A DNA stretch of 64,000 nt, taken from contig JAPDFW010000125.1 of the NCBI GenBank assembly GCA_028826165.1, positions 62,001 through 126,000 on the forward strand, in the 5' to 3' direction. The notes under the pieces are model-generated. The model saw only the letters and a list, made by a program, of their open reading frames with translations. It did no database searches and was not told the DNA's origin. This stretch comes from Anaeramoeba ignava BMAN. Lineage: Eukaryota > Protista > Anaeramoebae. Positions 1-22,055 of this stretch are shown one piece after another (the first letter of the stretch is position 1; each line of letters opens with the position of its first letter). The position numbers and the translations under genes are program-made.

Positions 1-3000
1 TTAGTTGTTTTAACTTCATATAGAGTTATAACGTTTGGAAAAAGAAAAACTTCAATAAAAGCAAAAGTAAAAAAAAAAATTAAAAAAAAAAAACAATTTG
101 AATTTTTTTTTCCAATTCATTTTCTTAAAAAAAAATTTTTTTTTAGATTTGTCGAAATGGCCATCTTTTTGATTTAAAAGAATTAACAAGTTTTGATGAT
201 AAAAAAGTAAAAGAACTTTAATTCAATTTTTAAATAATTTTTTTAAAATAAATTTTTTTTATTTTTTTAGTTAAAAGCAGTTTTTAAAGATTTTGAACTT
301 GAAATTACTTCTGAAAAAGCAAATGAAATTACAGAAACAATTTTAAAGAATTATTTAAAAATAAGTCTTGGAATACCAGAAGAACATTATTTAAAATTTT
401 CATGTATTCCTGAAGGAAGGTAAATTTAAAATTAATTATAAAATTATATATAAAATTATTTATAAAATTAATTATAAAATTATTTATAAAATTAATTATA
501 AAATTATATATAAAATTAATTATAAAATTAAATATAAAATTATTTATAAAATTATTTATAAAATTATTTATAAAATTATTTATAAAATTATTTATAAAAT
601 TATTTATAAAATTAATTATAAAATTAATTATAAAATTATTTATAAAATTATTTATAAAATTAAATATAAAAATTAATTATAAAATTAATTATAAAATTAT
701 TTATAAAATTAAATATAAAATTAAATATAAAATTAAATATAAAATTATTTATAAAATTATTTATAAAAATTATTTATAAAATTATTTATAAAATTATTTA
801 TAAAATTATTTATAAAATTATTTATAAAATTATTTATAAAATTATTTATAAAATTATTTATAAAATTATTTATAAAATTATTTATAAAATTAAATATAAA
901 ATTATTTATAAAATTTAATTATAAAATTATTTATAAAATTATTTATAAAATTAATTATAAAATTATTTTATAAAATTATTTATAAAATTAATTATAAAAT
1001 TATTTATAAAAATATAATTATAAAATTATTTATAAAATTATTTATAAAATTAAATATAAAATTAAATATAAAATTATTTATAAAATTCTTAAATAAATTA
1101 TTTTTAAAATTATTTATAAAATTAATTATAAAATTATTTATAAAATTAATTATAAAATTAAATATAAAATTAAATATAAAATTAAATATAAAATTATTTA
1201 TAAAATTAATTATTAAATTATTTATAAAATTATTTATAAAAATTAAATATAAAATTATTTATAAAATTAAATATAAAATTATTTATAAAATTATTTATAA
1301 AATTATTTATAAAATTATTTATAAAATTAAATATAAAATTAAATATAAAATTATTTATAAAATTATTTATAAAATTATTAATAAAATTATTTATAAAATT
1401 ATTTATAAAATTATTTATAAAATTAAATATAAAATTAAATATAAAATTAAATATAAAATTAATTATAAAATTATTTATAAAATTATTTATAAAATTATTT
1501 ATAAAATTATTTTATAAAATTATTTATAAAATTATTTATAAAATTATTTATAAAATTATTTATAAAATTAAATATAAAATTATTTATAAAATTAAATATA
1601 AAATTATTTATAAAATTATTTATAAAATTAATTATAAAATTATTTATAAAATTAATTATAAAATTATTTATAAAATTATTTATAAAATTAAATATAAAAT
1701 TAATTATAAAATTAATTATAAAATTATTTATAAAATTATTTATAAAATTAAATATAAAAATTATTTATAAAATTAAATATAAAATTATTTATAAAATTAT
1801 TTATAAAAATTAAATATAAAATTATTTATAAAATTAAATATAAAATTATTTATAAAATTATTTATAAAATTATTTATAAAATTAATTATAAAAATTAATT
1901 ATAAAATTATTTATAAAATTATTTATAAAATTATTTATAAAATTATATATAAAATTAAATATAAAATTATTTATAAAATTATTTATAAAATTAAATATAA
2001 AATTATTTATAAAATTATTTATAAAATTATTTATAAAATTATTTATAAAATTATTTATTAAATTATTAATAAAATTATATATTAAATTAATTATAAAATT
2101 ATATATAAAATTATTTATAAAATTAAATATAAAATTATTTATAAAATTCTTAAATAAAATTCTTAAATAAATTATTTTTAAATTTGTTTTAGATTAGGAC
2201 CATTTGATATTGGTAAAAAAAAAAATATAAATATATTTTTTAAAATATTAAAATAAATAAATAAAAAAAGAAACAAGTCAAGCAGATGGATTTTTAGATG
2301 CTTATAATGCTTGGTCTAACTATTATTCAACACCACCAAATTCTGAATTCATTAATTTTGTACAAAAAGAAATACTATCAGGAAATGATGAAGAAAAAAA
2401 AAGAATATTTGATTTAACAGGATTGAAAAATCTAGACAAATTTGCACAAGAACAAAATAACAGCATAGCAGCAATATTTGCTGCACTAAGATATAACCCT
2501 TTCTTCAATCAATTAATAGTAAGAAACGTAGCCAAAAGGGATATCATTTCACTTGCAAGCATGACAATTTCATGGAATTGCAATTTAACTAAAATAACTT
2601 TAAGTGGAACAAATACTTCAGAAGGTTTTGAAAAATTTGGTGAATCTCTTCAACAAAACAAGAAACTACCTTTGACTCACTTGGATCTTTCAATAAACAA
2701 AATACCCGAAAACAAAATGGAATCATTTACTAATGGAATCCGTTCAATGCAAACAGGATTGGTTTATCTCGATCTCTCATTTTGTCAACTTAGTGGTAAA
2801 TCAATTTCCATGTTATTTGAGGCTCTTACAAAAAATCACAGACACAGAACAATTTCTTATTTGAATCTCTCCCATAATAACTTCGGCAAAATTGGGACAG
2901 AAGGATTTAACAAATGGATGCAATCAACTCAAATGGAAAGTGTTTTGGCAACATTAAATCTTTCTAATTGCTCGCTTGATATTGGAGTGGCAGCGTTATC

Positions 3001-4090
3001 AATCGCGAAAAACTGTTCTGGACTATCTCTTCAATTCCTTAATTTGTCTGAAAATCGATTTGAAAAAAGAACTTATATTTCAGTTGCAACAATGCTTAAA
3101 GAAACTAAAACTCTTAAAGAACTTGATTTGACAAGAACTAAAATTTCAAGTGAAAATTGTGCTGATATTTTAAACGAAATTCTCTCTAATAAATCAATCA
3201 AAAATTTCTCACTCAAACTTGGAGGAAACGATATCGGTTTCCAAGGAGCTAAATGTCTTGCAAAAGTAATTGATTCTCATCCTGATTCAGATTCTTTGGA
3301 TGAAATTATTCTTGATGATAATAAATTCAAAGCTGAAGGTTTGGCTTTGGTTTCTGAATCTCTTTCCAAACTGGTTTTGCTTAAAAAAGTCTCTTTATCA
3401 AGAAATATTGTTAAAGCAAAAAACACAGTTAAAATTTTAGAGCCTCTTTCAAAATTATTCCAAAAGGCAAATCTTCAATATCTAAGAATTAAAGGAAATG
3501 ATAAAAATTTTCTTGGACCTGAAATTGAGAAAGTTTTCCAAAATTCAACAGGAAGAACAAATCTAATTGCTCTTGATATTTCGGGAAATCATTTGGGAGA
3601 AAAACCATTGAAAGCATTAGCAACAATGATTTCTCAATCAAACTGTCAAATTCAAACATTGATTTTTGATGAAAATAATACTAATATTGTTTCTCTTCAA
3701 GATTTTATTTGGGCTTTTGATTCTAATCCTAATTTATTTGATGTTCGCTGGCCTAAAAATGATTTTAATAGGTTTAAATCATCAGCGAATAAAAAAGAAT
3801 CTCAAAATATCAAAAAGGATTTAAAATCAATGAAGAAAAAATTCATTGAAGGAAATGCAAAAAACAATAAAGGAATTCAACCTATTTCAATTTCAATTGA
3901 TTATGAATTAATTTTGAATAATGATTGGAATACAATTCATTCAATTCATATTGCTAATGATTCTGTTGATGAACGTGATAATCCAAATTCTCCTTATTCT
4001 CTTATTTATGATAAATCTCCTAAAGAAGTTGATTTAAGTGAAAGTCAAGGTGAAGATTCTCAAGAACAAGAAAAAAGCAAAACTGATTAA
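1..4090 (+). CDS. CARMIL/LRRC16-like leucine-rich-repeat actin regulator, 5'-truncated by the window. Exons <1-66, 147-206, 271-419, 2193-2212, 2271-4090
   Basis: GT-AG splicing gives one continuous frame that runs into ORF 2423..4090. ADGFLDAYNAWSNYY and ALRYNPFFNQL resemble the CARMIL PH-LRR linker and LRR cap. RI-type LRRs follow (LTHLDLSIN, LVYLDLSFC, LIALDISGNHLG). Confidence 0.75.
425..2150. repeat. 12-bp minisatellite (AAAATTATTTAT)n, ~140 copies, filling intron 420-2192
   Basis: Periodicity read directly; variants AAAATTAAATAT and AAAATTAATTAT; almost no G/C. Confidence 0.95.
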
Positions 4091-4231: not shown

Positions 4232-5043
4232 TCAAAATTTATTTTTATTTTTTTCTTTTTCTATTTTTTCTAAAATATCTTTTTGATTATCTCTTATTTT
4301 ATCTCTCCAATAAATATTCATCTTATAATCTGGATTTGCTAATTCACTTTCATTTTCTTTAAAATTTAAAATAAAAGGATTAACTTTTTGAAAATGTTCC
4401 AAATCAAAAATAACATTTTCAATAGGATTAAATCTAGGATAACGAAAACAATTAGAGAGTTTAAACGGAGGAAAAGAAGCATGAAGATGAAGCCAATCAA
4501 TAGAAACAGGCAAATTGAATCCACAAACAAATCTTTTTGATAATTCATGAAAATCCATTTTTCGATAAATTTTTCCAGTTTCATTATTTAAAGATCTTGC
4601 ATAAGCAACTGCAATTTCAAATCCAATTCTATACATTTTCTTGACCATTCCGCAATGATTTGCTTTCAATTGATTTACTGTTTCAATTTTTGTTTTTGGA
4701 ATCACTAAAAAATGTATTTCACTAATTTTAAAAGCATCTTCCAAACAAACAATTTCTGAATCTTGATATAAAATCAATCGATTTTTATCATATTCTGCTT
4801 TTTGATTTGCTATTTTCCCAAAAAGATTTGGATCGTATTTTTCAATATCTCCTTTTTCTAATTGAAATCCACATAATGAACATCGATATGATATTGATTG
4901 ATTTGGTTTTTTGCAAACTGGACATATTCTTTTCCAGTTTTTTGGAAATTTTTAATTTCTTCTGAATATTTTAAAAAGTTTTCATTTTTCATTCGTTTTT
5001 TTCAATTTCTTTTTAATTTTTCTTCATTAACCATTTTTTCCAT
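4232..5043 (-). CDS. HIT-family (HINT3/aprataxin-like) hydrolase with an N-terminal C4 zinc finger; 5' part frameshifted in A-runs
   Basis: Reading in frame upstream of ORF 4232..4777 gives WKRICPVCKKPNQSISYRCSLCGFQL...NLFGKIA...ILYQDSEIVCLED...HFLVIPK...GFNLPVSIDWLHLH. The ATG at 5043 connects only through 1-nt indels in poly-A. Confidence 0.7.
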
Positions 5044-5226: not shown

Positions 5227-6832
5227 TTAAAAATTATTTTCTTTAAATTCAAGTTGAAAAATTTTCATCTTTTTCAATTTTTGATTATTTAATTTCCCAA
5301 AAAATTTTAATCCTTTTTCATTCTCTTTTTGATTTAATGATTCATATTTTCGAGAATTTTTATCATTAAATAAAGAAATAAAACTAGAATTTGATTGATC
5401 AATTGGAATAAGAAGATCAAAAGCGAAAAATATTGAAATATCTTTGTTATAACCAATAGAACTATCAACATGAGAATCTTTGATATTGAAAATTAAAGGG
5501 TTTTCTTGAATTTTGCCTTCAATTTGCAAAATGAATAAAAAAGCATTTGGATCTTTAATTAAAAATTTGGAAATATTATTTGAAAAATCTTGTTTGTTTT
5601 TGTTCTTGAAATTCCATCCAACTGAAGTATAACCCCCAAAAATATCCTGTGAATTTGTTTCAATTATTGCTATTAAATTTGGTTTATTATCACAATTTTC
5701 ATGAAAAGATGAAAGAGTTGAAATTTTTGTTTCAAATATTAAATTCCATCCAATTTTTTGTTTTCCTTTTTTTCAAAAATTTGATTAAGATTTGCAAAAA
5801 TTTGTTTTTGGAAAATTGTGAGATTTTCTTTTTGATCAATTTCCTTACTACTTGTTACTTCTTTTGTTTTTGATTATCAATATATTTTGTTTTTCTTCTT
5901 GATTAATTTTTCTTGATTTGTAGATTGGAATTTTTATTCAATATTTCAACTTGTTTATCAAAAGGAACAACTTTTTGTCTTAAAAATTCAAAATCTTCCG
6001 ATTTCTCTTCAAATGATTCATAAATTGTATATTGAAATTTTTGGATTAAAAATTTTAAATTTTCTGAAAAATTATCTGATTTATTCCAAATTTCATTCTT
6101 CACAAAATCTTCATTAAGATAATATAAAATAAATTCTGGATCTTTGAAAATGAAGTCTGTGATTTTTTGGATTTTGGTTTTTAATTGATTCACATCATAT
6201 CCAATAAGTCTAAATTGTAAATCATCTAATTTAAATTTTTCAAAATTAAAATTTGCAAAATATTTGATAATTTCTATATTTTTGGTGAATTTTGGATTTT
6301 CGTATCCAATATTTATAATTTCAATAATCTTCTCAATAGATAATTTCCCAAAGTTTACAGAATCAAAAAAATCTGGGAAGCTCAAATAAATTTCATTGTG
6401 GAAAAATTGGATAATTTGCAAAAAATCTTTGAAATTTAAATTTTTTAAATCAATTAAAAAAGAATCATTTAGTTTCTTTAAATTTTGTTTGATTTCAAAC
6501 TTCCAATTTAAGGAAGGAATTAATTTTGAACCAAATTGAGATAAATTGAAACGATCAATAAAAGTAAGATCTGATAAATCAAGTTCATTTGTATATATAT
6601 AATTGAGAATAATATCAACAATTTTAGGTTTAATATTAGAAAAAATTATTTCATTTTCTGTTGATTCACAAAAGTAAGTTCTGAAATAAGAAGAACGACA
6701 TGCAAGAATATTTTTGTGACAGAAAAATTTCTTATTCTTTTCTGTTATAATTGTAAAATCTGATAATATTGATTGTGTGTAAAGTTTTTTTATATCAATA
6801 AGAAGTTGATTTTCTTTATTTAAATTTTTCAT
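5227..6832 (-). CDS. BTB/POZ + TLDc domain protein, frameshifted between domains (assembly error or pseudogene)
   Basis: BTB signature SDFTIITEKNKKFFCHKNILACRSSYF in ORF 5903..6832. Positions 5760-5227 read WNLIFE...FHENCDNKPNLIAIIETNSQDIFGGYTSVGW...DPNAFLFIL, the TLDc signature, in frame with ORF 5227..5529. Confidence 0.75.
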
Positions 6833-6882: not shown

Positions 6883-8806
6883 AAAAATAATTTTAATTTA
6901 AATTTAATTAATTAATAAATTTATTTAAAATAATCTAAATAAATAAATATAAATTAAATTTAATAAATTTATATTAATTTTTATTATTAAATATTTAATT
7001 AAAAAATAAAAATATTTTAATAAATAAATATAAATAAAATTAAATAATATTAATTTAATAATTAATTAATAAATTTATTTAAAATAATCTAAATAAATAA
7101 TATTAAATTAAATTTAATAAATTTATATTAATTTTAATTATTAAATATTTAATTAAAAAATAAAAATATTTTAATAAATAAATATAAATAAAATTAAATA
7201 ATTTTAATTTAATAATTAATTAATAAACTTATTTAAAATAATCTAAATAAATAATATTAAATTAAATTTAATAAATTTATATTAATTTTAATTATTAAAT
7301 ATTTAATTAAAAATAAAAATATTTTAATAAATAAATATAAATAAAATTAATTAATATTAATTTAATAATTAATTAATAAATTTATTTAAAATAATCTAAA
7401 TAAACAAATTTAAATTAAATTTAATAAATTTATATTAATTTTATATTATTAAATATTAAATTAAAAAAATAAAAATATTTTTAATAAATAAATATATTAA
7501 ATTAAATAATATTAACTTAATAATTAATTAATAAATTTATTTAAAATAATCTAAATAAATAAATCTAAATTAAATTTAATAAATTTATATTAATTTTATA
7601 TTATTAAATATTTAATTAAAAAAATAAAAATATTTTAATAAATAAATATAAATTAAATTAAATAATATTAATTTAATAATTAATTAATAAACTTATTTAA
7701 AATAATCTAAATAAATAATTATAAATTAAATTTAATAAATTTATATTAATTTTGATTATTAAATATTAAATTAAAAAATAAAAATATTTTAATAAATAAA
7801 TATAAATAGAATTAAATAATTTTAATTTAATAATTAATTAATAAATTTATTCAAAAATAATTCAAATAAATAATATTAAATTAAATTTAATAAATTTATA
7901 TTAATTTTTAATTATTAAATATTAAATTAAAAGTAAAAAATATTTTAATAAATAAATATAAATAAAATTAAATAATATTAATTTAATAATTAATTAATAA
8001 ATTTATTTAAAATAATCTAAATAAATAATTTTATATTAAATTTAATAAATTTATATTAATTTTTATTATTAAATATTTAATTAAAAAATAAAAATATTTT
8101 TAATAAATAAATATAAATAAAATTAATTAATATTAACTTAATAATTAATTAATAAATTTATTTAAAATAATCTAAATAAACAAATTTTAAATTAAATTTA
8201 ATAAATTTATATTAATTTTAATTATTAAATATTTAATTAAAAATAAAAATATTTTAATAAATAAATATAAATAAAATTAAATAATATTAACTTAATAATT
8301 AATTAATAAATTTATTTAAAAATAATATAAATAAACAAATCTAAATTAAATTTAATAAATTTATATTAATTTTTAATTATTAAAGATTTAATAAATAAAA
8401 ATAAAAATATTTTAATAAATAAATATAAATTAAATTAAATAATAATTTAATAATTAATTAATAAATTTATTTAAAATAATCTAAATAAACAAAATATAAA
8501 TTAAATTTAATAAATTTATATTAATTTTGATTATTAAATATTTAATTGAAAATAAATAAAAATATTTTAATAAATAAATATAAATAAAATTAAATAATAT
8601 TAATTTAATAATTAATTAATAAATTTATTTAAAATAATCTAAATAAATAATATTAAATTAAATTTAATAAATTTATATTAATTTTAATTATTAAATATTT
8701 AATTAAAAAATAAAAATATTTTAATAAATAAATATAAATTAAATTAAATAATATTAATTTAATAATTAATTAATAAACTTATTTAAAATAATATAAATAA
8801 ATAATT
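6883..8806. repeat. Tandem array A1, ~155-bp A/T unit, ~12.5 copies
   Basis: Anchor ATAATCTAAATA (or a variant) recurs 13 times from ~6930 to ~8788, mean spacing ~155 bp. Confidence 0.9.
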
Positions 8807-8988
8807 GTATATTTATATTTTTAAAATTCTGTCTTTTTTTCTTGTTCTTCAATTTCATTTTGTTTTTCAAAAAAAAAAGAAAAAAATCAAAGTCAACTAA
8901 CTGTTGTTAAAGAGATTTTAAACAAAATTTTATTTTTTTGATTTCCATTTTTTTTCTTCTTCTTTTTTTTTTCATCAAATTTTAATTT

Positions 8989-11567
8989 ATGTCAAAAAAA
9001 TTTGATCAACAAAATCAAACAATTTTAACGACTATAGAAATTCAAAATGAACTTTCAAAAATTAGAATTGAAGAACATTCAAAATCAAAACATTGTAATA
9101 AAATTAGTGGGATTCCTTATAATATTTTTCTTGATTCTCCAATTGAAATTATAAACCAAAAGCATGAAAATTTATCACCAATTTTGATAAGAAAACAAAC
9201 ACAATCTTTAATGAATGAAATACAAGAAGGTTCAAGAAAAAAAAATCTCGTTTTGTATGGAGGAAATGGAACAGGAAAATCTTACACACTTTTTCATTTA
9301 GCTTGCTATTTCTCTTCTTTTCATGTAAAAACTTCTATATATTTATATTGATATTTATATTTATATTTATATTTATATTTATATTTATATTTATATTTAT
9401 ATTTATATTTATATTGATATTTATATTTATATTTATATTTATATTTATATTTATATTGATATTTATATTTATATTTATATTTATATTTTATATTTATATT
9501 TATATTTATATTTATATTTATATTGATATTTATATTTATATTTATATTTTTATTCTTGTTTTTGTTCTTATAAAATAATTTGGAATTGAAAATTCATTTA
9601 AAATCAAATTAAAAGCCTTGGAATATCCAGAAAAAGAAAGAATCCAATAAAGAAAATTTAAATTCAAATTTAAGATTAACTAATGAAAATGATTTAAATT
9701 TTGAAAATTTAACAATCCAAGAAAAAACCAATTCAAATTCTTTGAAAAACAATTCAAGAAAAAAAAAAGATTCCTCTCTTAATATACAAATTGAAGATAA
9801 TACAATTCACAAACAAAAAAATCAAAATCAAAATCAAAAATGGGTTGTTCTTTATTTGAATGATTTGCTTCGGTTATCGAGATTGGAAAGTCATGTTGTT
9901 TCCAAACAAATAATGACATATCTTTTTGCGAAATATGGAATCAAATTATTTGAAAAATGTAATTTTGATTATGATGAACAATTATGGAATAAAAAAAAAC
10001 CCAAATCAAAGGATAAAAGACAAATGGTTAAGAATTGCAAAAACTTTTTTGAGAATCTCTTTGAATTAAATGTTGAAGAATTTAAATTTATGATTGCAAT
10101 TGATGAATACAATATTCTTTATCGAGAAAAATTTCCAGATCCAAAACACATTTTAAATATTTTCAAAGATTTAAGAAATATCAGAAATGGATTGATGATA
10201 ACAGCTGTGAGTTCAAGTTTTGATCAGGACAAGATTCCATATATTGATTTCCAAGAATTTGGAGTGAAAACAAAAAGGTTTACTGAATCGGGGAATTTGA
10301 ATCAATTTTCGAATGGAAAAGAAAAGAAGGAACAATCCCACAATATCTAACAAGAGATTATTGGCAACAGTTTACAAACGCAGTCCCAAGAGTATTATAT
10401 ATGGTGTCACGAAGATATCGAACCTCGAAAAACGAATCTTTTGATGAATCCACTTTTTTACTAAATTGTGGAATAGATTGCATTGATCATTATAAAAAAA
10501 GAGTTAGGTATGTTTTGCAGAAAATCAAAGAAATCAAAAATCCTGAAACAATCAAACAAGATATCCAACTTCCAACTCTTATTTGCCTAAATGAAAATAT
10601 TACTTCTTTACCTGAATTTTGGGAATTATCAGGTTTATTTGAAACACAATTTTCCTCAAGGAATTCGAATTATCAACAAAAAGAGAATGAAAATGATCAT
10701 AAATTGAATCAAAAACAACCTTCTCAGCCAATCGAAAAGCAAGTTGTTCCCATTTGTTCATGGGTAACATCTGCAATTCTAGAAATTTTTCGAAATGATG
10801 GAGTCAATTCGGTTAATTTTCTATGTAGTTATGATATAAAATGGAAGGCATTAGAATTATTTGTTTTGAATGGATTTCAAAATTTTTCTAGTACTTCAAA
10901 ACAGAAATTAACTTTATCAAATCGAAATCTGAAAGGAAAGAAACAAGAAAATCCTGAAACATTCCAAATTTCGATAAAAAGAATTGTTTATCAAGATCAA
11001 CAAAAATCATTAGAAGATATTTCAATAGGAGATTTGATTGTTTGTTATAAAGGTCATTCTGTTGTTGATTTCGTTTGTTTATCTAAAAATGAGAATCAAG
11101 AAAAAGAACTCTTTTATTTTCAGGTTTCAATATTAGATTATTCTCATCACGATAAAAAAGTAGATAGTTTATTCAAAAGAGATTTCAAACCAACTAAACA
11201 AAAAAAAACATCAATTTTAGAATATTATTCAAAATTATCTGGGATAAAATTAGATGAAAATACTTCCCAATTTATCGAAAGATTATCCAAACAAAATCAA
11301 AAGAAAAAAAAAGAAGAAATCTCTCCAAAAGAAGAAAAACAAAAAACACCAGAGAAAAAGCCCACAAGACATGAAAAACAAGAAATAAGGAAAAACTCAT
11401 ATATTCTTCCACCAAATCAATATTATGTTTATATTACTTCCACATCAAATTTTCTCAAATCTTCTCAATATTCTCAAGATCCAGTTATTTTGGTTAATGG
11501 TCAACATTTAAACCAAATAAATCCTTTTGATTATGCATTCTGTGAAAAAGTTTTAATTGAAAAGTAA
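8989..11567 (+). CDS. P-loop NTPase (STAND/DAP3-like) fused to a C-terminal restriction-endonuclease-fold domain (Crinkler/CR-type NTPase+REase). Exons 8989-9324 and 9616-11567; frameshift at GGGG 10290-10293
   Basis: Walker [11 protein letters not shown] (9259-9282). Intron 9325-9615 joins in frame to ORF 9742..10350, which has Walker B MIAIDEYN. After the frameshift the sequence reads EFESIFEW...FTNAVPRVL into ORF 10401..11567, which has WKALELF, SVVDFVC and LFYFQVS (E...D...QxS REase-like triad). Confidence 0.7.
9338..9550. repeat. (ATATTT)n microsatellite inside intron 9325-9615
   Basis: Read directly. Confidence 0.9.
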
Positions 11568-11650
11568 CAGAAAATAGTTTCAATTCTTTTTTTTTTGTTC
11601 TTTTCTCAATAAACAAATTCAAATTGAAATTTAGTTTTTTAATTGGAATG

Positions 11651-13608
11651 AATTAAATAATATTAATTTAATAATTATTAATAAAATTATTTAAAATAAT
11701 CTAAATAAATAAAATAAATTAAATTTTAAATTTATATTTAATTTTAAATAAATTTAATTTAATTAAAAATATTTTAATAAATAAATATAAATTAGTAAAA
11801 AATAAATTTAAAATAATCTAAATAAATAATATTAAATTAAATTTAATAAATTTATATTAATTTTGATTATTAAATATTTAAATTAAAAATAAAAAAAAAA
11901 AAAAAAATTAAATAAATTAAATTAAATAATAAAATAAAATTTATTTAAAAAATTAAATAATATAAATTAAATTTAATAATAAATTTATAATTAATATTTA
12001 ATTAAAAATAAAAATATATTTTAATAAATAAATATAAATAAAATTAAATAATATTAATTTAATAATTAATTAATAAATTTATTTAAAATAATCTAAATAA
12101 ATAATTTTAAATTAAATTTAATAAATTTATATTAATTTTTAATTATTAAATATTTAATTAAAAAATAAAAATATTTTAATAAATAAATATAAATAAAATT
12201 AAATAATATTAATTTAATAATTAATTAATAAATTTATTTAAAATAATCTAAATAAATAATATTAAATTAAATTTAATAAATTTATATTAATTTTTATTAT
12301 TAAATATTTAATTAAAAAATAAAAATATTTTAATAAATAAATATAAATTAAAATTAAATTAATTTAATAATTAATTAATAAACTTATTTAAAATAATCCA
12401 AATAAATAATATTAAATTAAATTTAATAAATTTATATTAATTTTAATTATTAAATAATATTAAAAATAAAAATAAATTAAAAAAAATAAAATTAAATAAT
12501 ATTAATTTAATAATTAATTAATAAATTTATTTTAAAAATAATCTAAATAAATTTAAATTAAATTTTTAAATTTATATTAATTTTAAAATTAAATATTAAA
12601 TTAAAAATAAAAATATTTTAATAAATAAATATAAATTAAAATTAAATAATATTAATTTTAAAATAATTAATAAATTTATTTAAAAATAATCTAAATAAAT
12701 AAATCTAAATTAAATTTAATAAATTTATATTAATTTTGATTATTAAATATTAATTAAAAAATAAAAATATTTTAATAAATAAATATAAATAAAATTAAAT
12801 AATATTAACTTAATAATTAATTAATAAATTTATTTAAAATAATCTAAATAAACAAATCTAAATTAAATTTAATAAATTTATATTAATTTTTATTATTAAA
12901 TATTAAATTAAAAAAATAAAAATATTTTAATAAATAAATATAAATAAAATTAAATAATATTAATTTAATAATTAATTAATAAATTTATTTAAAATAATCT
13001 AAATAAATAATTTTAAATTAAATTTAATAAATTTATATTAATTTTAATTATTAAATATTAAATTAAAAAATAAAAATATTTTAATAAATAAATTAAATAA
13101 TATTAATTTTAATAAATTAATAACTTATTTAAAATAATTCAAATAAATAAATCTAAATTAAATTTAATAAATTTATATTAATTTTGATTAAATATTAAAT
13201 TAAAAATAAAAAATTTATTTTAAAATAAATCTAAATAAAATAATTTATTAAATTTATTTAATAATTTAAAATAAAAATTAATTAAATTTTTAATTTTATT
13301 ATTAATTAGTAAAAATATTTTAATTAAAAAATAAAAATATTTTAATAAATAAATATAAATTAAATTAAAATAAATTAATATTAATTTAATAATTTAATTA
13401 ATAAATTTATTTAAAAATAAATTAAATAAATAATTTTAATTAAATAAAATTAAAAAAATTTATATTATTTTTATTATTAAATATTAAATTAAAAATAAAA
13501 ATATTTTAATAAATAAATTTATATTAAAAAATAAAATATTAATTTAATAATTAATAAATAAATATAAATTTAAAATAATAATAAATTTATTTAAAAATAA
13601 ATAATTTT
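11651..13608. repeat. Tandem array A2, same ~155-bp unit and orientation as A1, more degenerate at the ends
   Basis: 12020-12330 nearly matches A1 units; anchors near 12088, 12243, 12392, 12538, 12686, 12838 and 12994. Confidence 0.9.
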
Positions 13609-13650: not shown

Positions 13651-14228
13651 ATGAATGAAGAAAACAAAAAAATATTAGTAAAAAAAATAAAGAAAATAAA
13701 ATCAATTAAAATCAAAATTAAAACAAAAAAATGAATTAATTTAATAAATAGATAACAGGAACAAACAAGGAATTAAAATTTGAATTTGGATATCAATTAG
13801 TTTCCAAAACAAAAAAATTTCAAATAATTCCAATATTTGCAAAAGAAATAACAGAAGAATTACAAGAATTAAATGAAGATTTTTTAATATTTTTAATTGA
13901 AATATCAGATTCATCAAGTTTTGAATTATTTTTACAACATTTATTAACTTTAAATATTAAAGAATTTATTGGTAAATCAAGTGTAGTTTTAATACAAACA
14001 AAAAATCAAGTTTCAAAAGCATTTCAAATAGAAGAATTAATTAGAATAACAAATTATTTTAGAATTCCTTTATTTCATATTAACGGTTTAAAAGAAAATT
14101 TAAATCAAAATTTAATTTTAGATCAAGAAGTTTTTTCACAATTAATTTCTTATATTGAAATTTGTTGTAAAATTTCTTCTTTTGATTTTTTTCTTTTTGA
14201 TTCAATTGGATTTGAATTTGAAAATTAA
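13651..14228 (+). CDS. CENPM: CENP-M-like kinetochore pseudo-GTPase, 167 aa, absent from the ORF track. Exons 13651-13677 and 13752-14228
   Basis: Spliced translation MNEENKKIL|ITGTNKELKFEFGYQLV...IFAKEI...DFLIFLIEISDSSSFELFLQHLLTLNIKEFIGKSSVVL...FQIEELIRITNYFRIPLFHI...SQLISYIEICC is colinear with human CENP-M as recalled (TILLVGT, HLAKSL, DLIVFVVNL, FFLGKV, YQSPLL, LQICA). Exon 2 is 158 sense codons plus TAA. Confidence 0.7.
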
Positions 14229-14348: not shown

Positions 14349-14420
14349 TGGTCACTCGTATAATGGTTAGTACATTCGCTTCACACGCGAGAAATTTGGG
14401 TTCGATTCCCAAGTGACCAA
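14349..14420 (+). tRNA. tRNA-Val (anticodon CAC)
   Basis: Cloverleaf: acceptor TGGTCAC/GTGACCA, D arm GTAT..GTAC, anticodon arm TTCGC-TT CAC AC-GCGAG, T arm TTGGG-TTCGATT-CCCAA. Confidence 0.92.
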
Positions 14421-18699: not shown

Positions 18700-20265
18700 T
18701 TTTATTATTTAAATTATTAATTTATTTATAATTTATTTTTAAATTTAATTTTATTTAATTTTATAATTAAATATTTATTTAATTCTATTTAATTTTATTA
18801 TTAAAAATTTAATTAAATTTTATTACATTTTTTTATTTTAATTTTTAAATTTATTTTAATTTATTATTTATTTATAATTTATTTTTTAAATTTAATTTTA
18901 TTTTAATTTTATAATTAAATATTTATTTAATTCTATTTAATTTTATTATTAAAAATTTAATTAAATTTTAATTACATTTTTATTTTAATTTTTTAAATTT
19001 ATTTTAATTTATAATTTATTTTATAATTTATTTTTAAATTTAATTTTATTTAATTTTATAATTAAATATTTATTTAATTCTATTTAATTTTTATTATTAA
19101 AAATTTAATTAAATTTTATTACATTTTTATATTAATTTTTAAATTTATTTTAATTTATAATTTATTTATAATTTATTTTTAAATTTAATTTTATATTAAT
19201 TCTAAATTAAATATTTATTTAATTCTATTTAATTTTATTATTAAAAATTTAATTAAATTTTATTCCATTTTTATTTTTAATTTTTAAATTTATTTTAATT
19301 TATTATTTATTTATAATTTATTTTTAAATTTAATTTTTATATAATTTTATAATTAAATATTTATTTAAATCTATTTAATTTTATTATTAAAAATTTATTT
19401 AAATTTTATTCCATTTTTATATTAATTTTTAAATTTATTTTAATTTATTATTTATTTATAATTTATTTTTAAATTTAATTTTATTTAATTCTATAATTAA
19501 ATATTTATTTAATTCTATTTAATTTTATTATTAAAAATTTATTTAAATTTTATTCCATTTTTATTTTAATTTTTAAATTTATTTTATTTTTTATTATTTA
19601 TTTATAATTTATTTTTAAATTTAATTTTATTTAATTTTATAATTAAATATTAATTTAATTTTATTTAATTTTATTATTAAAAATTTAATTAAATTTTATT
19701 CCATTTTTATTTTAATTTTTAAATTTATTTTAAATTATTAATTTATTTTATAATTTATTTTTATATTTAATTTTATTTTAATTTTTATAATTAAATATTT
19801 ATTTAATTCTATTTAATTTTATTATTAAAAATTTAATTAAATTTTATTACATTTTTATATTAATTTTTAAATTTATTGTAATTTATTATTTATTTATAAT
19901 TTATTTTTAAATTTAATTTTATTTAATTTTATAATTAAATATTAATTTAATTCTATTTAATTTTATTATTAAAAATTTAATTAAATTTTATTCAATTTTT
20001 ATTTCAATTTTTAAATTTATTTTAATTTATTATTTATTTATAAATTATTTTTAAATTTAATTTTATTTAATTTTATAATTAAATATTTATTTAATTCTAC
20101 TTAATTTTATTATTAAAAATTTAATTAAATTTTATTCCATTTTTATATTAATTTTTAAATTTATTTTAATTTATAATTTATTTATAATTTATTTTTAAAT
20201 TTAATTTTATTTAATTTTATAATTAAATATTTATTTAATTCTATTTAATTTTATTATTAAAAATT
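18700..20265. repeat. Tandem array B, ~146-bp T-rich unit, ~11 copies
   Basis: Anchor TTCTATTTAATTTTATTATTAAAAATTT recurs from ~18783 to ~20239 at ~146-bp spacing. Confidence 0.9.
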
Positions 20266-20385
20266 TGAATAAAAAGAAAAAAAGATTTGATTTATTTGGA
20301 TTTGAAAAAATTTTTTAATTTCGTTTTTCAAAAGAAAAAAAAAGAATGAGAAAAAAAAAACGAAAAAAAAAAAGAAGAAAAGAAT

Positions 20386-22055
20386 TTAAATCTGTTGCCA
20401 GTCACCCATCACAGCATTTTTAATTGATCTAATGTATTGAGAAGGGACAAAATAGAACCAAATTACTGAATTTCCAGATCTATTCATTTTGAAACCTAAA
20501 ACACTATATCCTTCTTGTCCTGGAATTTTTTGACTTATTACTGATTGAATTGAATTTATCGAAATTTTTTTTGTTGAACTATATGATCCAACCCAAATTT
20601 GATCTTGATCAAATTTGAAAATTAATTGAACCTTTTTATAAAACAAAATCGGAAAAATTTTTTCAATTTAAAATTAAATTTAAAATTATGATTAAAATTA
20701 AAATTAAAATTTAAAATTTAAAATTATAATTATAATTAAAATTAAAATTAAAATTAGAATTAAAATTATAATTAATATCAAAATTAAAATTAATATTAAA
20801 ATTTAAAATTATAATTAAAATTAAAATTAAAATTAAAATAAAAATTAAAATAAAAATTAAAATTAATTTATAGAATTAAAATTAAAAGCAAAATTAAATT
20901 TAAAATTATGATTAAAATTAAAATTAATATCAAAATTAAAATTAAAATTAAAATTTAAAATTATAATTATAATTAAAATTAAAATTAAAATTAAAATCAT
21001 ATTTAAAATTAAAATTCCAATTAAAATTAAAATCAAAATCAAAATTAAAATTAAAATTAAAATTAAAATTAAAATCAAAATTTAAATTAAAATCAAAATT
21101 TAAATTAAAATTAAAATTAAAATTAAAATTAAAATTAAAATTATAATTATAATTAAAATTCATTTATAAAATTAAAATTAAAATTAAAATTAAAATTAAT
21201 ATTAAAATTAAAATTAAAAATAAAAATTAAAATTAAAATTAAAATTAAAATTAAAATTAAAATTAAAATTAAAAATTAAAATTATATTTAAAATTAAAAT
21301 TAAAATTAAAAATCAAAATTAAAATTAAAATTAAAATTAAAATTAAAATTAATATTAAAATTAAAATTAAAATTAAAATTAAAATTAAAATTAAAATTAA
21401 AATTAAAATTAAAATTAAAATTAAAATTAAAATTAAAATTAAAATTAAAATTAAAATTAAAATTAAAATTAATATCAAAATTAAAATTAAAATTAAAATT
21501 TAAAATTATAATTAAAATTAAAATTAAAATTAAAATTAAAATTAAAATTAAAATTAAAATTCAAATTAAAATTAAAATTTATATTGAAAATTAAATAACA
21601 ACCTTTTGACCATTTGAATCGAGAATATTTTTAATAGAATTTTGAGGGAGAGGATAACTCTTATTAGAAACACCAACTTCTGCATTTTGAGGAAGACCTT
21701 TTTGAAGGATTTTTTGATGAATTTCTTTTTCAATAAAAGATTCTTGATTTGAATCATCATCATTTTCAACAGGTTCTTCTTTTTCAATTGGTTTACTAGT
21801 TAAAGCTTGAGCAATTTCAACAAAAGTTGAACCCATTAAAAGTATTTTTGCTTTATTTTTAATTCCAACCGTTTCAAGTGTTTTTTTTGGTTCTTTTAAA
21901 TATTTTGATTTGAAAAATAGTTTTTGATTGTTTTTTGGAACTTTCGTTATTTCTTCAACTTTTTTTTGTAATTCTTCAATTGTTGTGTCTTTTTTTAATG
22001 TTAATGAAAAGTCATTTTTTTTATATCTTAAGTCAAATGTTAATTCTTCTGTCAT
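20386..22055 (-). CDS. UBFD1: Ubiquitin domain-containing protein UBFD1 (UBL + C-terminal PH-like domain). Exons 22055-21603 and 20631-20386
   Basis: N-terminal UBL. HQKILQKGLP...NGQK|VQLIFKFDQDQIWVG...WFYFVPSQYIRSIKNAVMGDWQ matches the UBFD1 C-domain as recalled (GKVRLTFKLEQDQLWIG...WVYWVPTQYVDAIKDTVLGKWQ). Confidence 0.9.
20670..21580. repeat. (AAAATT)n microsatellite filling the UBFD1 intron
   Basis: Read directly. Confidence 0.9.

Follow-up and report, generated by a model that had tools for sequence, protein, structure and literature searches.

Long direct repeats of host DNA around a dispersed NTPase-nuclease gene family in Anaeramoeba ignava: twin minisatellite arrays as a probable target duplication

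Why should a single nuclease-like gene of Anaeramoeba ignava BMAN be enclosed by two arrays of the same minisatellite, similar in length and identical in orientation? The locus lies within a stretch of 64,000 nucleotides (assembly GCA_028826165.1, contig JAPDFW010000125.1, positions 62,001 to 126,000 of the forward strand), referred to below as the window, for which an earlier note had proposed a novel selfish or mobile system whose arrays are the element's own satellite. We find that the gene belongs to a dispersed family that moves at the DNA level and that carries, at several of its sites, long and site-specific direct repeats of host DNA. The twin arrays are probably one more instance of this pattern, that is, a target duplication of a minisatellite that was already resident at the site. 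Hence, of the original proposal, the dispersed multi-copy family that looks mobile stands, and the view of the 155-bp unit as the element's own satellite does not; the mobile-element idea survives in an altered, testable form, and the satellite model is not supported.

The arrays, referred to as A1 and A2, were delimited with Tandem Repeats Finder, which places A1 at 6885-8804 and A2 at about 11651-13604, and a reference unit was compared along the window (Table 1). Full units of both arrays match the reference at 79-100% identity and in the same orientation, with exactly one gene between the arrays, as the earlier note had described. The claim that this unit forms arrays nowhere else in the window also holds, the remaining matches reaching only 68-78%, which is the level of any A/T-only DNA. 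The clean units of A1 and A2 are mutually 94-99% alike based on a block-collinearity comparison (unit splitting missed the degenerate anchors). At the level of the whole 42.8-Mb assembly, a 24-mer taken from the unit has 24 exact matches, all of them within these two arrays or their segmental duplicate (see below), and a DNA search for the 155-bp unit agrees with this count within the limits of the search. The window is rich in other large, AT-rich arrays with different units (e.g., 427-2182, 18708-20274 and 20668-21595), and thus a gene with an array next to it is nothing out of the ordinary; only the matched pair is unusual. Kinship of the 155-bp unit with the 144-bp array at 18708, or with the 144-bp family found at paralogous locus L020, was considered and rejected, as the likeness is AT background only and no 18-mers are shared above threshold. 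The genes that flank the minisatellite locus are a BTB gene on one side and a CENP-M-like gene on the other.

Table 1. Features of the repeat-bracketed locus, in window coordinates. REase, restriction endonuclease.
Feature	Position	Strand	Description
Left direct repeat (A1)	about 6885-8806	+	~12.4 copies of a 154-155-bp minisatellite unit, ~1.5% GC; private to the locus
Inserted cassette (proposed)	8807-11650	+	2844 bp with promoter region, gene and 3' flank; delimited by the inner repeat boundaries
Upstream motif	8895-8925	+	~95 bp ahead of the ATG; common to L016, L017, L018 and L022
Exon 1	8989-9324	+	Start of the DAP3/STAND-like NTPase; Walker A at 9259-9282
Intron	9325-9615	+	Phase 0, GT-AG, contains a 6-bp microsatellite; acceptor placed from the reading frame
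Exon 2	9616-11567 (stop)	+	Walker B at 10090-10113, GxP-like TNAVPR at 10374-10391, helical domain, REase domain
REase-fold (PD-(D/E)xK-like) domain	10848-11567	+	Conserved E, H-x-x-D and Q-x-S; E..HxxD..QxS motif at 10848-11129
Right direct repeat (A2)	about 11651-13608	+	~12.6 copies of the A1 unit, both ends more degenerate

A layout of this kind could, in principle, be produced by an assembler that doubled one array around the gene, and at least one base-level assembly error does exist within the gene. Specifically, the frameshift at 10290-10291 is missing from the full-depth read contigs of all three sequencing runs that cover the position as well as from a second genomic copy of the locus; it is an assembly error, and the reading of the gene as a pseudogene was rejected on the basis of these read contigs. 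The same second copy speaks against an artefactual layout. Positions 1-20274 of the window recur, inverted, on the same contig (C115:816-835k) at 88-99% identity, and the copy of the locus therein (C115:823-829k) includes the gene and both arrays, with unit counts that differ from those of the window (3.4 and 10.4 units), and has a private 969-bp inverted-repeat element inside exon 2. The presence of both arrays in the second copy means that the layout is not a one-off misassembly; further, A1 and A2 have distinct unique flanks, both inner and outer. We therefore consider an assembly artefact, which the earlier note had named as an outcome that would undo its proposal, to be extremely unlikely.

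To characterize the protein, the exons of the window gene were searched separately, and folds and family searches were performed on naturally intact, single-frame paralogues. Profile searches with 14 aligned A. ignava copies recovered the DAP3 and STAND-type NTPase families, as well as mS29 structures with a profile E of 2e-12. In the AlphaFold model of one paralogue (L030; pLDDT 78), the first 320-410 residues resemble mS29 (Z 22) and, at Z 16-17, STAND-like ATPases of archaea. Residues 425-618 of L030, which are homologous to the C-terminal frame of the window gene (E 3e-31), resemble, in an Atlas model, Crinkler-family proteins (TM 0.66 and 0.61) and the XamI, Mrr and PDDEXK_4 domains (TM 0.47-0.51). 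The NTPase filled the PDB matches of the whole model, and the REase assignment rests, for this reason, on the Atlas model and the motifs; folded alone without an alignment, the REase domain reached a pLDDT of 37. Conservation of the presumed catalytic residues, in the nuclease as well as the ATPase motifs, extends to homologues found in aphelids, a chytrid, a choanoflagellate and metagenomes. Accordingly, the STAND-like NTPase joined to a PD-(D/E)xK fold that had been anticipated from the letters alone was recovered on L030, and the Walker A and B, TNAVPR and E..D..QxS-type motifs are found where they had been placed. The absence of a ubiquitin-like header was likewise confirmed: our search returned no ubiquitin-like or other header family, and exon 1 begins ~25 residues ahead of the NTPase-aligned region. 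Family searches of the copies gave no match to a DDE transposase or a reverse transcriptase, and the cassette, with its one gene between the repeats, contains no cognate methyltransferase. Based on these models, the protein is assigned to the NTPase + REase core of CR (Crinkler/RHS-type) proteins in a header-less form, with its enzymatic activity being a prediction. The label "mitochondrial ribosomal protein S29" assigned by NCBI is a domain-level mislabel that is misleading for these genes. The likeness to mS29/DAP3 is one of NTPase fold and covers residues ~30-330 only; ~22 divergent loci with an added C-terminal REase domain are not compatible with a ribosomal protein that is single-copy and NTPase-only.

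These ~22 loci are situated in unrelated neighbourhoods of the A. ignava genome, and 17 independent ones (the window locus and 16 others) were examined. In a quick tree, the family copies constitute one A. ignava clade, with the repeat-bearing copies scattered through it. Identity between subfamilies ranges from 27 to 65%, and the copies appear, judging from their sequences, to be old, with no young burst. Among subfamily members the frames are mostly open and dN/dS is ~0.55-0.7, a crude estimate given the very AT-rich genome. L016-L022 have a GT donor at the same codon position as the intron of the window gene, and the shared upstream motif is probably the gene's own promoter element. That the intron donor and this motif have been kept across loci indicates that the subfamily of the window gene moved as DNA and, together with the missing reverse transcriptase, excludes a non-LTR retrotransposon. 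Scans of metagenomes and viruses yielded no useful new loci.

The DNA around the paralogues is where the arrays of the window find their context. Comparing upstream with downstream DNA, we observed tight long direct repeats (i.e., at least 100 bp, at least 85% identity and tightly around the gene) at 6/17 loci, namely the window locus, L016/L017, L020, L022, L025 and L028, and no long direct repeat at the other 11/17. The repeats consist of local host DNA, are 0.3-2 kb long and differ at each site, and several represent truncated ends of host genes. For instance, the 909-bp repeat at L022 (94% identity) begins inside a 244-aa host ORF and has only two copies in the genome, while the 300-bp repeat at L028 (97.7%) reproduces an SLC12 3' gene end, of which one more copy lies 7 kb away. 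At L016/L017, 263 bp of unique DNA together with an 11-bp array are present three times around the two gene copies, and at L020 there are twin ~144-bp arrays, the downstream of which is without the head of its family and hence represents a partial copy of the 144-bp minisatellite. L026 has a 27-bp leader repeat and L023 a looser 2.6-kb repeat, and the order at C82:342k is repeat-gene-repeat-gene-repeat; repeat length is not fixed across loci but varies between ~28 bp and 2 kb. None of the repeats was found beside a sister paralogue among the fetched loci, and we therefore reject the possibility that the repeat was brought along from a donor locus. Such bracketing was not seen at any of the 17 non-tandem control genes (Fisher p=0.018 against 6/17, or p=0.044 when the ambiguous L025, which is located among RCC1-BTB tandem genes, is omitted), with the control genes being mostly non-mobile and single-copy, so that the comparison does not establish that the pattern is specific to the family. 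Among nine loci from other eukaryotes, a long direct repeat was found at one (L033) and none at the other eight. L033 comes from an unrelated eukaryote with 41% GC, and its sharp 415-bp repeats (96% identity), a duplicated 3' end of a GATA gene, enclose a 2.1-kb cassette.

How do these observations compare with the original idea of a selfish element with a 155-bp satellite of its own, which it would target, amplify or move with, and whose arrays would be terminal repeats or binding or cut sites? The unit is indeed private to the flanks of the gene, a second family member (L020) also has twin arrays, and members of the family lie next to nucleosome-sized arrays more often than expected. However, the co-occurrence of unit and paralogues that this idea calls for was not observed, since 0/16 of the other fetched family loci carry the 155-bp unit; the L020 unit belongs to another minisatellite family, which is dispersed over 143 places, almost none of which has the gene; and the closest paralogues lie between repeats of host DNA that is not satellite. 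With the 24-mer confined to this locus and its duplicate and with the paralogues bracketed by other local DNA, the own-satellite reading is, in our view, very unlikely.

Alternatively, it is possible that the gene landed in pre-existing tandem repeats, either a minisatellite or a gene array, and split them with no duplication involved, AT-rich arrays perhaps being favoured break sites. In line with this, an array of 140-160 bp (nucleosome-sized) units is located directly upstream at 7/17 loci, these arrays representing four different unit families. Three of the loci (L020, L024 and L027) are behind one dispersed, headed 144-bp minisatellite family with 143 heads genome-wide, nearly all of them far from the gene, which has a probability of P~0.001 if ~15,000 genes are assumed for the genome; further, L021, L025 and L026 are in or beside RCC1-BTB tandem arrays. 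What argues against a simple interruption is the register of the arrays and the nature of the repeats at other loci. A2 begins ~6 bp ahead of a unit start and A1 stops ~58 bp into a unit, and an offset of this size does not fit the clean split of a single array but requires that at least ~60 bp, modulo 155, were duplicated. Moreover, the repeats at L022, L028 and L033 are truncated gene fragments that abut the cassette on both sides, an outcome not expected from a random split. We thus regard the interruption of existing repeats as improbable.

We favor, instead, insertion accompanied by a long target duplication. Under this model, the cassette would be one copy of a lineage-expanded, header-less NTPase + REase gene that spreads as DNA and takes its intron and promoter along. 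A break in the target, either staggered or resected, would be repaired with a gene copy as the template, and the stretch between the two offset break points would thereby become duplicated on both sides of the gene. At the window locus this stretch would have been part or all of the resident 155-bp minisatellite, and the two array halves could then have lengthened or shortened independently, as the unit counts of the two copies (12.4/12.6 vs. 3.4/10.4) suggest. The flanking repeats would subsequently permit local amplification, perhaps as at C82:342k, or loss. The least certain step is the origin of the break, which the model ascribes to the gene's own REase, with the NTPase as its loader or motor; with this step included, the full model comes close to an even prospect in our estimation, without reaching it. 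Evidence counter to the model is the lack of conserved element ends: no terminal inverted repeats were found in the cassettes, none of which exceeds its own shuffled control, and no ends are shared among cassettes. A dedicated transposase normally needs such conserved ends. The 11/17 A. ignava loci and 8/9 loci of other eukaryotes at which no long direct repeat was found count against the model as well, as does the age of the copies, among which there is no recent burst.

A close rival to the self-made break is that the genes are passive passengers; that is, host break repair moves expanding gene families and duplicates the target in doing so, and the nuclease serves as a conflict or defence effector with no role in its own movement. 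The twin arrays would represent a target duplication in this case as well. The missing element ends are consistent with this view, and many copies are immediately preceded by host-type leaders or arrays. The recent copies L029-L031 show replacement changes in excess (30.5 vs. 2.5, based on few sites), which fits an effector, and some homologues are fixed at a single locus across strains; for example, the 16-member cluster of P0039 represents one fixed orthologous locus with no repeats. Ordinary transposed genes of Arabidopsis also have target-derived flanking repeats, at a rate close to that of the family (PMC2869330). On the other hand, the control genes, none of which was bracketed, included one BTB and one ankyrin-BTB gene; within the window, repeat-bracketed genes are otherwise limited to tandem RCC1-BTB-like genes. 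The pattern also recurs at the homologue of the unrelated eukaryote (L033), and bacterial nuclease genes show it at raised frequency (PMC2853133). Taken together, we consider passive movement a serious contender, albeit one that we would not call likely; if true, it would mean that in Anaeramoeba a strong host process moves genes and duplicates the target in doing so, a less surprising outcome. In the opposite direction, the family might constitute an autonomous mobile class that does without terminal repeats, in which a nuclease positioned or translocated by the ATPase makes widely spaced nicks, host repair generates the 0.3-2-kb duplications, and the other repeat-bracketed cassettes of the genome are maybe moved in trans. 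We view this possibility as rather doubtful; if true, such a class would be the transposon state from which Crinkler/RHS effectors have been proposed to descend.

Finally, it is important to place the insertion model among known systems. A cut-and-paste DNA transposon was rejected since there are no terminal inverted repeats, shared termini, DDE transposase or short duplication of fixed length, and an LTR-like or satellite-terminated element since the copies share no terminal repeat. In PMC5289972 and PMC11342252, CR proteins are described as having an NTPase + REase core, with descent from NTPase + REase mobile elements being proposed. The A. ignava proteins share with CR proteins and with their header-less relatives, such as Medea1 of Tribolium (Zhang et al. 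2016, as summarised in these two papers), the P-loop NTPase, the helical domain, the C-terminal REase and the lineage-specific expansion. In contrast to CR effectors, the window copy is without a ubiquitin-like or other header, and its NTPase is closest to DAP3/mS29 among solved structures. In a literature search that had the original CR paper outside its scope, we found no earlier mention of CR genes flanked by long direct repeats that derive from the target, nor a description of how the CR-ancestral NTPase + REase element inserts. That is, the protein is of a known kind, and the insertion footprint appears to be undescribed for CR-type genes.

Parts of this footprint are known from other genes and elements. 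In Arabidopsis, 36% of the transposed genes with a known parent have target-derived flanking repeats of over 30 bp (Woodhouse et al. 2010, PMC2869330), and these non-TE genes likewise moved singly and as DNA, with genic repeats matching the target in about a third of the cases. In Arabidopsis, however, the repeat is often present at the donor locus as well and no nuclease is encoded, whereas the repeats of A. ignava exceed these in length and do not occur at sister paralogues. The LINEs Dualen of Chlamydomonas (median duplication of 900 bp) and R9 of rotifers (126 bp) similarly produce very long and variable target-site duplications, which have been attributed to widely spaced nicks (PMC9977147), but the A. 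ignava genes have no reverse transcriptase and retain the intron and the upstream motif.

The closest precedent is provided by the bacterial restriction-modification genes, whose insertion produces long target duplications of variable length, between which the genes amplify (Furuta, Abe, Kobayashi 2010, PMC2853133). The characteristics of such insertions, i.e., a nuclease gene, no transposase or terminal repeats, and direct repeats that are long, variable and unique to the site (45 to about 420 bp in the bacterial cases), are all found in A. ignava. The differences are that the eukaryotic gene is a fused NTPase-REase with an intron, that its repeats extend up to ~2 kb, that it is known here from occupied sites, and that there is no methyltransferase, for which reason a restriction-modification system proper was rejected. 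A footprint of long, variable, target-derived direct repeats with no defined ends and a DNA intermediate, observed at six loci of one genome and in one unrelated eukaryote, makes the hypothesis of a transposon origin of Crinkler/RHS effectors directly testable and parallels the mobility of restriction genes in bacteria.

The left part of the window is present twice over at least 20 kb: positions 1-20274 recur, inverted, at G000:C115:816376-835216 (loci L013-L015), close to the opposite end of the contig, with 88-99% identity between the two copies. Their minisatellites are all unequal in length (e.g., the 144/145-bp array spans 1.6 kb in the window vs. 5.3 kb in the second copy). The pair may represent a segmental duplication or, alternatively, a second haplotype. 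The second copy of the NTPase + REase gene carries a 969-bp insertion with an apparent 3-bp target duplication (AAT), and this element is found in five genomic copies that are 97-100% identical; judged by these features, the element and its copies are a young MITE family.

Other genes of the duplicated part are given in the table below. The CENP-M match falls narrowly short of the curated cut-off, and the gene, absent from the ORF list, is a probable CENP-M-like gene. The shorter length of the HIT/DcpS-type protein in the window is probably due to another assembly frameshift.

Features of the window, the second copy of its left part and the paralogous loci
Feature	Position	Remarks
HIT/DcpS-type gene	window 4232-4777	181 aa in window vs. 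313 aa in second copy
Probable CENP-M-like gene, two exons	window 13651-14228	right of A2; Pfam CENP-M, E 3.5e-5
tRNA-Val(CAC) gene	window 14349-14420	also in second copy
Non-coding element (969 bp), terminal inverted repeats	L013:5966-6934	in exon 2 of second gene copy
144-bp minisatellite, constant unique head	L020:6733-7573; L024:2425-2821; L027:3365-3830	dispersed

The headed minisatellite of three paralogous loci (L020, L024 and L027) has 143 copies in the genome (93-97% identity) and frequently ends at a gene leader of the TCATTTTT type; it looks like a mobile minisatellite or a portable promoter. Two more pairs of same-orientation arrays, spaced 4 and 8 kb apart, were observed at G000:C35:387328-392179 and C91:99319-108198, and no NTPase + REase family gene was detected between the paired arrays at either location.

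Among the paralogues, L029, L030 and L031 are three recent copies (proteins 94-97% identical) that differ by ~30 replacement vs. ~3 other changes, an excess that, at these few sites, hints at diversifying selection. Paralogue L024 has a long extension (2899-3969) N-terminal to the NTPase, possibly an acquired header, for which no Pfam match was found. Finally, a homologue in Amoeboaphelidium protococcarum (L041) has a 72-bp inverted repeat (83%) on both sides (5864-5930 and 7890-7961), weaker in two orthologous copies, and, at this one locus, the repeats are possibly old terminal repeats.
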